64,000 bases of DNA, taken from sequence record NC_007623.1. One strand, 5' to 3'. Every line of letters starts with the position of its first letter. Positions within the stretch are counted from its first letter, which is position 1. Below, one piece after another: positions 28,570 to 41,654 of this stretch. The notes beneath the pieces were generated by a model, which saw only the letters and a list, made by a program, of their open reading frames with translations, ran no database searches and was not told the DNA's origin. A program made the position numbers and the translations under genes.

Positions 28570-28601
28570 TTATATTTGCAGTTATACCGTTTATTGGAAT
28601 A

Positions 28602-28618
28602 TTTTAAACCTACATTAT
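28602..28618 (+). promoter_or_regulatory. Phage early promoter motif
   Basis: TTTTAAACCTACATTAT, recalled as the EL-type conserved motif; a near-copy is at 41609. Confidence 0.7.
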
Positions 28619-28690
28619 CCTTGGGTACAAGACAATAGGTTATCTGACCGCGCACCAGATGATCTTGACACTAACTTGAGGATCCTCACC

Positions 28691-35465: not shown

Positions 35466-35596
35466 AAAAGACCTGGATGTTGATGTCTCGTAGGAGACAT
35501 TCACCGAGCAGTATGGGATTGACCTAGGGAGTAAACTGGGCTCATTCATCGTTGATTAAAAACCTTTTGTCATTAATCCACTTATAGGACACCGTT

Positions 35597-36064
35597 ATGT
35601 CGAAGAAAATGCCGCCGGACTTCCGTAAACTGCACCTGGAAGCCTTGTACACCTACCTGAATGAAACCACGGGCGCGTGTGTCATCCTGGTTAACACCGA
35701 CGCCGGCCCTGAAGTGAAAGAAATCGGTCAAGGGAACCCCAGCGTCTTCTTCAACATCGGAGGGTTCGCGGTGAAGTACCTTCATTTCCATGAGGAGTAC
35801 GTTCATTTCGAATGCCGTTGCCAGGGGAAGGTATACGAGCTCTTCATCAAGTATGAAGATATCTTGGGTGTGCGGTATAACAGAGACTTGATTTACCTGG
35901 GTGGGGTGTGCCGAATAGTAGGTCAGGATGAAGACGGTCGGTTGATGCTCGCCCCTGGTGAAATCGCTCCTCCAGAACAGGATGATAAGAAAGAATCCTC
36001 CGTCCCCAAACCTCAGAACGGACACACCTCTCCGTTCAAGGTCATTGAAGGCGGTAAAGACTAA
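35597..36064 (+). CDS. sspB: SspB-like ClpXP protease adaptor
   Basis: 'LEALYTYL...VILVN...VFFNIGGFAVKYLHFHEEYVHFECRCQGKVYELFIKYEDILGV' aligns by eye with SspB (ALYEW...LVN...VLNISxxAVxxLxxxxxxxxFxxRFxG...VPxxAVLAI); disordered linker and C-terminal 'SPFKVIEGGKD'. Confidence 0.7.
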   Translation: MSKKMPPDFRKLHLEALYTYLNETTGACVILVNTDAGPEVKEIGQGNPSVFFNIGGFAVKYLHFHEEYVHFECRCQGKVYELFIKYEDILGVRYNRDLIYLGGVCRIVGQDEDGRLMLAPGEIAPPEQDDKKESSVPKPQNGHTSPFKVIEGGKD

Positions 36065-40945: not shown

Positions 40946-41021
40946 TCCGTGATAGCTCAGTAGGTAGAGCAACTGTTTCGTAAACAGTAGGTCCCGGGTT
41001 CGAACCCTGGTCACGGAACCA
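40946..41021 (+). tRNA. trnT: tRNA-Thr(CGT)
   Basis: Complete cloverleaf: TCCGTGA/TCACGGA acceptor, GCTC/GAGC D-arm, ACTGT-TTCGTAA-ACAGT anticodon arm, CCGGG-TTCGAAC-CCTGG T-arm and encoded CCA. Confidence 0.95.
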
Positions 41022-41589: not shown

Positions 41590-41608
41590 TTTATTACGGT
41601 ATAGCGTA

Positions 41609-41625
41609 TTTTAAACCTAGATTAT
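41609..41625 (+). promoter_or_regulatory. Phage early promoter motif
   Basis: TTTTAAACCTAGATTAT, 16/17 identical to the 28602 motif and about 30 nt before ATG 41655. Confidence 0.7.
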
Positions 41626-41654
41626 TGATGCGTTAAGCCACGAGGAATAAATCA

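Follow-up and report, generated by a model that had tools for sequence, protein, structure and literature searches.

Bacterial SspB delivers proteins to the ClpXP protease. Strong conservation within SspB is restricted to the dimer interface and the groove for the ssrA tag (PMC9963277). Pseudomonas aeruginosa has a working SspB-ClpX system, in which the final eight residues of SspB are used to bind ClpX, and their change to alanine raises the KD from 27 nM to 179 nM (PMC13251409). Phages also encode homologs. Erwinia phage RAY gp39, described as a putative ClpXP adaptor resembling SspB (PMC10299810), and Pseudomonas phage pf16 gp18 (PMC5587285) have both been proposed to act with the ClpXP of the host. 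In the literature that we searched on phage SspB-like proteins the discussion is at the level of annotation or modelling (RAY gp39, pf16 gp18), and no biochemical test was found there.

The gene for gp86 in the genome of phage EL

The gene analyzed here lies in a stretch of 64,000 nucleotides (the window), whose coordinates become those of the Pseudomonas phage EL record (AJ697969 / NC_007623) on addition of 62000. A 4-kb stretch around the gp86 gene has 100% identity to positions 96000-100000 of that record, and the open reading frame itself is a 100% match to positions 97597-98064. Since 2005 ORF086 has stood in the record as "putative bacterial stringent starvation protein", so that gp86 as a relative of SspB is not new. 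Identification of the protein in itself adds little, as it has been annotated for so long and SspB-like genes are routine in jumbo phages. ORF086 is also present in nine other Elvirus or EL-like genomes, with protein identities of 94-100%. The sequence of MIZ-Pa99 (PV472050.1) has 98% identity to EL over the 4-kb query, while its taxonomy line reads Straboviridae (T4-like), which is probably a mislabel.

Table 1. Features of the ORF086 locus, in window coordinates.
Feature	Position	Strand	Remarks
CDS EL ORF086 / gp86 (CAG27180.1)	35597..36064	+	155 aa plus stop; SspB-family protein
Shine-Dalgarno-like AGGA	35586..35589	+	7 nt 5' of ATG; read from sequence
SspB-type substrate-binding domain, ~residues 7-104	35615..35908	+	helix 7-24, then beta strands
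Acidic, Pro-rich flexible linker, ~residues 105-146	35909..36034	+	low pLDDT
XB-like (ClpX-binding-like) C-terminal peptide F147-K-V-I-E151, then G-G-K-D	36035..36061	+	alignment
G+C-rich 8-bp hairpin CCGGUAGG / CCUACCGG, 5-nt loop	36084..36104	+	125-nt gap before ORF087

The features of the locus are collected in Table 1. An earlier note on this DNA, made from the letters of the sequence, had given the gene a Shine-Dalgarno sequence and a terminator of its own. The former is present just before the ATG. For the latter there is indeed a hairpin downstream, with a fold energy of -20.7 kcal/mol and z of -2.84, but it lacks a U-tract and is not called by a strict terminator scan. It may act as a weak terminator or in the stability of the RNA.

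The 19-nt motif labelled 'putative phage promoter' in the EL record (ATTTTAAACCTAGATTATT) has copies in the window only at 28601-28619 and 41608-41626, both on the + strand. The first of these has two mismatches, and by chance none would be expected in the window. The two copies flank a same-strand block, ORF079-ORF097, that includes ORF086 and a tRNA gene. ORF086 therefore lies inside this long block, without its own copy of the motif. Public sequencing runs that hold close relatives have flat contig depth and tagmentation adapters; these are probably libraries of DNA, not RNA, and nothing on transcription follows from them.

ARAGORN and Rfam return no tmRNA in the window, as had been noted before from the sequence. 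The tRNA-Thr gene that they do return (anticodon CGT; 40946-41021, + strand) is the sole RNA gene in the 64 kb. The nine ORFs flanking ORF086 match only PHROGs of unknown function or nothing, with no functional link found among them, so the neighborhood is uninformative on the role of gp86. Antisense to ORF086 runs an ORF of 147 aa with a GTG start (window 35582-36025, - strand). We reject this as a gene and regard it as a shadow ORF, with the homology and the signal of selection both in the + frame.

Pairwise dN/dS lies between 0.09 and 0.26 among six Elvirus orthologs, indicating that gp86 is a functional protein; the exception is a single pair so nearly identical that its few changes are uninformative. 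The folded domain is almost invariant across Elvirus, most of the substitutions fall in the linker, and the tail at the C-terminus is unchanged in five of the six genomes. The exception is vB_PQ1 (PQ516283.1; L106 151-663), in which the last residues diverge (EGKKSV) and the annotated protein is 15 codons longer. The shifted ending looks like a single-base indel. The vB_PQ1 assembly is 184 kb long with 488 annotated features, and its match to EL is in several separate pieces, so that a sequencing error is likely to lie behind the shifted ending.

Homology and fold of gp86

A Pfam search with gp86 gave no match, the gathering score of PF04386 not being reached, and a phmmer search of gp86 alone against the PDB sequences found nothing. 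PHROG 8945 ('SspB-like') matches with E = 1.8e-4. Six NCBIfam SspB equivalog models match as well, all far under cutoff; the best E value is 2.8e-7 (residues 12-141), and the best score of 30.5 bits compares with 191 bits for the cutoff of the curated family.

When 1.8 billion protein representatives were searched exhaustively with HMMER, only two relatives of gp86 from outside Elvirus were returned, the metagenomic proteins P0002 (E = 4e-5) and P0003 (E = 1.4e-4), with 35-38% identity to it. P0003 passes the Pfam SspB cutoff, with 29.5 bits versus 27. Among the recorded annotations there are no Pfam matches for the genes beside P0002 and P0003, and a metagenome scan with alignment A4 found no relative.

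We made a family profile of four sequences, these being gp86, P0002, P0003 and PHABIO_349 of phage Phabio. Searched against the PDB this finds E. coli SspB (8ET3 chain Y) with E = 5.8e-14 and the SspB of H. influenzae with E ~1e-10. When gp86 and P0002 (omitting P0003) were compared with four canonical SspBs by hhalign, the probability was 97.3% and E was 1.6e-11. An AlphaFold prediction from the single sequence is poor (pLDDT 54), and is superseded by an AlphaFold2 model built on an alignment of 21 sequences. In this model pLDDT is 94-96 over residues 10-100, with the N-terminal helix (residues 7-24) at ~94 and strands following it. The 13 best matches of the model in a Foldseek search of the PDB are all SspB (13 of 13), with TM scores by target of 0.64-0.75 and an rmsd of 2.1 Å over 94-98 residues for 1twb_A and 8et3_Y. 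Next in rank come the alpha-proteobacterial SspB orthologs of Caulobacter and Agrobacterium.

The earlier note had seen an SspB-like core and had proposed comparing gp86 with SspB by AlphaFold and profile methods. That comparison finds the SspB fold, and the profile, hhalign and Foldseek evidence all agree. Taking the profile matches with the model and its Foldseek neighbors, we therefore regard the fold and the homology as settled; gp86 belongs to the SspB adaptor family, of which it is a divergent member from a phage.

Such proteins are widely spread. Homologs of E. coli SspB turn up by tblastn in 78 deposited records of phages, among them pf16 and jumbo phages (phiKZ-like, RAY-like, Ralstonia and Xanthomonas). 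Many of the homologs carry the name SspB-like or ClpXP specificity-enhancing factor. A Foldseek search of predicted structures of viral proteins extends the list to proteins of Noxifer, PhiEaH1, PhiPA3 (gp270), 201phi2-1 and the Aeromonas phage phiA8-29. The last two phages appear to have two separate SspB-fold proteins each (BFVD B3FJK8 and B3FJL0 in 201phi2-1; A0A1W6DXU6 and A0A1W6DY71 in phiA8-29). Two metagenomic proteins of 380 aa, P0014 and P0015, hold a full SspA with its GST-like domains and a full SspB of the E. coli type in one reading frame. These are either natural sspA-sspB fusions or artefacts of assembly or frameshift.

The substrate surface and the C-terminal tail

Nine of the 32 positions that are invariant in seven canonical SspBs are retained by gp86, where the seven, a small set, are three enterobacterial sequences and those of Acinetobacter, pf16, an IMG/VR contig and Ralstonia phage FLC4-3B. 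Those retained include the equivalents of N54 and G78, which are universally invariant, and of A16, V32, I55, A59, L63 and F72. The P-Y-x-x-R signature of the N-terminal helix and the entire I-Y-A-R-E-x-G-x-G block are absent. The equivalent of A56, a residue of the tag pocket confirmed by experiment (PMC12304284), is Gly in gp86. Strong conservation in SspB is confined to two surfaces, the ssrA groove and the dimer interface, and gp86 keeps so few of the invariant positions that one of the two at least must have been remodelled. The reading that it is the groove must be taken as one resting on conservation, not on mapped tag contacts. Because so much of the canonical pattern is lost, the cargo of gp86 is probably something other than the standard ssrA tag.

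The loss of these positions bears directly on a canonical function, by which gp86 would be an extra SspB that boosts the clearance by ClpXP of ssrA-tagged products of stalled translation. The fold and layout are those expected of SspB, and some residues in the region of the pocket are kept or compatible, with an invariant N54 equivalent, A59 kept and Gly for A56. Yet the small fraction of invariant positions and the missing I-Y-A-R-E-x-G-x-G block argue against this function, and the host already encodes an SspB (PMC13251409). Moreover the pf16 protein, which has 52.8% identity to E. coli SspB where the two align, is what a canonical phage copy looks like, and gp86 is far from that. We consider it quite unlikely that gp86 serves in this way.

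The substrate groove had been described in the earlier note as looking diverged, on the strength of two cysteines in the sequence FECRCQG. Divergence in general is borne out by the positions lost, while the argument from the cysteines is not. C73 falls in the column of canonical A74, and relatives often have a cysteine there too. C75 falls in the column of F76; it is F, S or V in relatives and is unconserved even in the nearest of them, so that C73 and C75 are not a conserved pair, and we reject them as a special site.

Beyond the folded domain is the acidic, proline-rich linker that had been picked out from the sequence, at approximately residues 104-146, and then the ending SPFKVIEGGKD, exactly as it had been read. 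Within the linker the AlphaFold2 pLDDT is mostly below 60, falling below 50 at residues 104-106, 118-135, 137-139 and 141-146, and it is unalignable between phage lineages. MAFFT aligns F147-K-V-I-E151 of gp86 with L161-R-V-V-K165 of E. coli SspB. These columns, terminal in the other proteins, read LKVVK in P0002, LTVVK in P0003 and RAY gp39, LSVVK in Ralstonia FLC4-3B, LRVVK in pf16 gp18 and LTIVK in Erwinia SNUABM_54. The tail of gp86 departs from the canonical motif by an F in place of L, an E in place of the last K and the four added residues GGKD. The XB peptide binds the zinc-binding domain of ClpX at any position in a polypeptide, and XB-GGS fusions bind with KD ~65-70 nM (PMC12373786), so the GGKD extension need not block docking. 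The alignment of the tail, taken with these data and with those on the SspB of P. aeruginosa, makes it plausible that the tail of gp86 is a ClpX-docking peptide.

Endings of the form hydrophobic-x-V-I-x-G-G-K occur in other jumbo phages of Pseudomonas, as MTVIDGGK in Phabio, LTVIKGGKK in phiKZ gp232 (a protein that is identical in PA7), LTLIQGGKK in Psa21 and LRVIQGGKA in D6; the linkers are otherwise unalignable with that of gp86. The putative XB-GGK tail common to the SspB-like proteins of Pseudomonas jumbo phages is an only modestly new detail. In a maximum-likelihood tree of the binding domain, which is poorly resolved, EL groups with the canonical-tailed P0002 and P0003 (support 84/87), and the alternative of one clade for all the proteins with a GGK tail is not rejected (p-AU 0.245). 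A single origin of the GGK tail and convergence on Pseudomonas hosts would both be compatible with this weakly resolved tree.

The SspB fold might have been reused for a role without ClpX, so that the domain binds some peptide while the hydrophobic-x-V-I-x-G-G-K tail docks on another phage or host partner. The tail is a distinct variant seen only in Pseudomonas jumbo phages, phiKZ gp232 and the Phabio-type proteins have long regions absent from SspB, and phiKZ gp232 co-fractionated with interactors of the phage shell (PMC10449902), all of which would fit such a role. Nevertheless the tail is homologous by position to XB tails that are proven, the nearest relatives of the EL protein have the canonical LKVVK and LTVVK endings, and XB tolerates a C-terminal extension (PMC12373786). 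On balance a role independent of ClpX seems to us rather improbable.

Several sequence features of the related proteins were observed in the course of these alignments. Residues 129-137 in the linker of E. coli SspB (L006:2283-2777, - strand) read V-M-S-V-I-D-G-D-K, close to the Phabio-type C-terminal W-M-T-V-I-D-G-G-K, and P0003 has a similar Y-M-S-V-Q-A-D-G directly past its folded domain. The Phabio-type proteins (P0004-P0010; PHABIO_349, L002:3001-3714), of 229-251 aa, have a long conserved middle region absent from SspB, H-L-K-L-I-Q-N-H-R ... P-V-D-P-K-N-P-S-Y-P-F-P-V-D-R-F ... G-I-E-F-H-S-R-K, which includes a second XB-like element, L-K-L-I. In the SspB-like proteins of Xanthomonas phages LucasX and RTH11 the tail is D-F-R-A-x-R-K-P-x-S instead of L-x-V-V-K, which suggests a different docking peptide.

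A putative adaptor and its relation to known systems

The reading that we prefer, held tentatively as falling a little short of likely, is that gp86 is a phage adaptor of the SspB family that uses its tail to dock on the ClpX of the host and delivers cargo of a non-canonical kind to ClpXP. During infection gp86 would be located in the cytoplasm of the host and not in the phage nucleus, and would probably be a dimer formed through its N-terminal helix. The F-K-V-I-E tail would dock on the zinc-binding N-domain of P. aeruginosa ClpX. Docked gp86 would then tether the ligand of its remodelled peptide groove to the host ClpXP, leading to its degradation. This cargo would more likely be host or phage proteins chosen by the phage than the standard ssrA tag, because most of the positions conserved in canonical SspB are changed. 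We count in support of the adaptor the fold and homology, the alignment of the tail, its constancy within Elvirus beside a varying linker, and the GGK ending in five lineages of Pseudomonas jumbo phages. The published data on XB and on the SspB of P. aeruginosa, the location of homologs and, for the altered specificity, the lost canonical positions count on the same side.

Data on the location of related proteins come from other phages. GFP-tagged RAY gp39 is cytoplasmic (PMC10299810). The gp232 protein of phiKZ is a non-virion protein found in infected cells in fractions of high molecular weight, and the tagged constructs of that study are mostly diffuse and outside the phage shell (PMC10449902). 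In the available part of the phiKZ co-fractionation supplements PHIKZ232 and ClpX are listed apart, with no gp232-ClpX pairing (PMC10449902). Counted against the adaptor are this missing pairing in that part of the supplements, the scores of gp86 alone below the Pfam and NCBIfam cutoffs, the variant tail and the neutral neighbors of the gene.

Docking by the tail could also have the opposite consequence. Acting as a decoy, gp86 would occupy the N-domain of ClpX and deliver nothing, competing with the host SspB and with other substrates that depend on the N-domain. The processing of MucA that activates AlgU might be affected in this way, or phage proteins might be shielded from ClpXP. Free XB peptide inhibits the SspB-stimulated degradation by ClpXP, and that of lambda O and FtsZ (PMC3983244), and in P. 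aeruginosa the SspB of the host links AlgU-MucA to ClpX (PMC13251409). A competitive role has been proposed from modelling for pf16 gp18 (PMC5587285). It would also be consistent with blocking that the tail is conserved while most of the canonical-invariant positions, in the groove and dimer interface, are lost. However, a pure tail-decoy would have no need of the folded domain, which is under purifying selection and near-invariant in Elvirus, and which retains its core and the universal N54 and G78 equivalents. We think that blocking is unlikely. The suggestion of the earlier note, that the phage protein may either hijack or block ClpXP, is a reasonable one.

In infections by nucleus-forming phages many phage proteins, and the defences of the host, stay in the cytoplasm, where ClpXP patrols. 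An adaptor or blocker of ClpXP made by the phage, if that is what gp86 proves to be, would be a compact tool for takeover of the host. More broadly, EL gp86, phiKZ gp232 and the Phabio, Psa21 and D6 proteins might form a functionally distinct subclass, with a remodelled groove and an XB-GGK tail, that either retargets ClpXP to non-ssrA substrates such as cytoplasmic host defence or regulatory proteins, or occupies the ClpX N-domain to shut off host adaptor pathways. We rate the existence of such a subclass as somewhat unlikely. The conserved hydrophobic-x-V-I-x-G-G-K tail and the loss of canonical-invariant positions provide simple experimental handles.

Compared with bacterial SspB (PF04386; PDB 1OX9, 1OU8, 8ET3), gp86 has the same substrate-binding fold at ~17-21% identity. 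The two share a layout of N-terminal helix, beta domain, disordered acidic linker and a short hydrophobic-basic-V-hydrophobic peptide. The gene for gp86 is located in a phage block of genes of unknown function, whereas that for bacterial SspB is in the sspA-sspB operon. P0002 (149 aa) and P0003 (148 aa) resemble gp86 in size and layout but end in their canonical motifs, where gp86 has FKVIE followed by GGKD. With phiKZ gp232, PHABIO_349, Psa21_299 and the D6 protein, gp86 shares the SspB-fold N-terminal domain, the GGK ending and Pseudomonas hosts; these proteins are longer (235-302 aa), with a large lineage-specific middle, and their identity to gp86 is ~20-26%. RAY is a nucleus-forming jumbo phage like EL, with its gp39 in the cytoplasm, and pf16 gp18 is host-like in sequence. 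Both of these proteins end in a canonical terminal L-T/R-V-V-K, unlike gp86, in which the corresponding peptide is a variant followed by GGKD.
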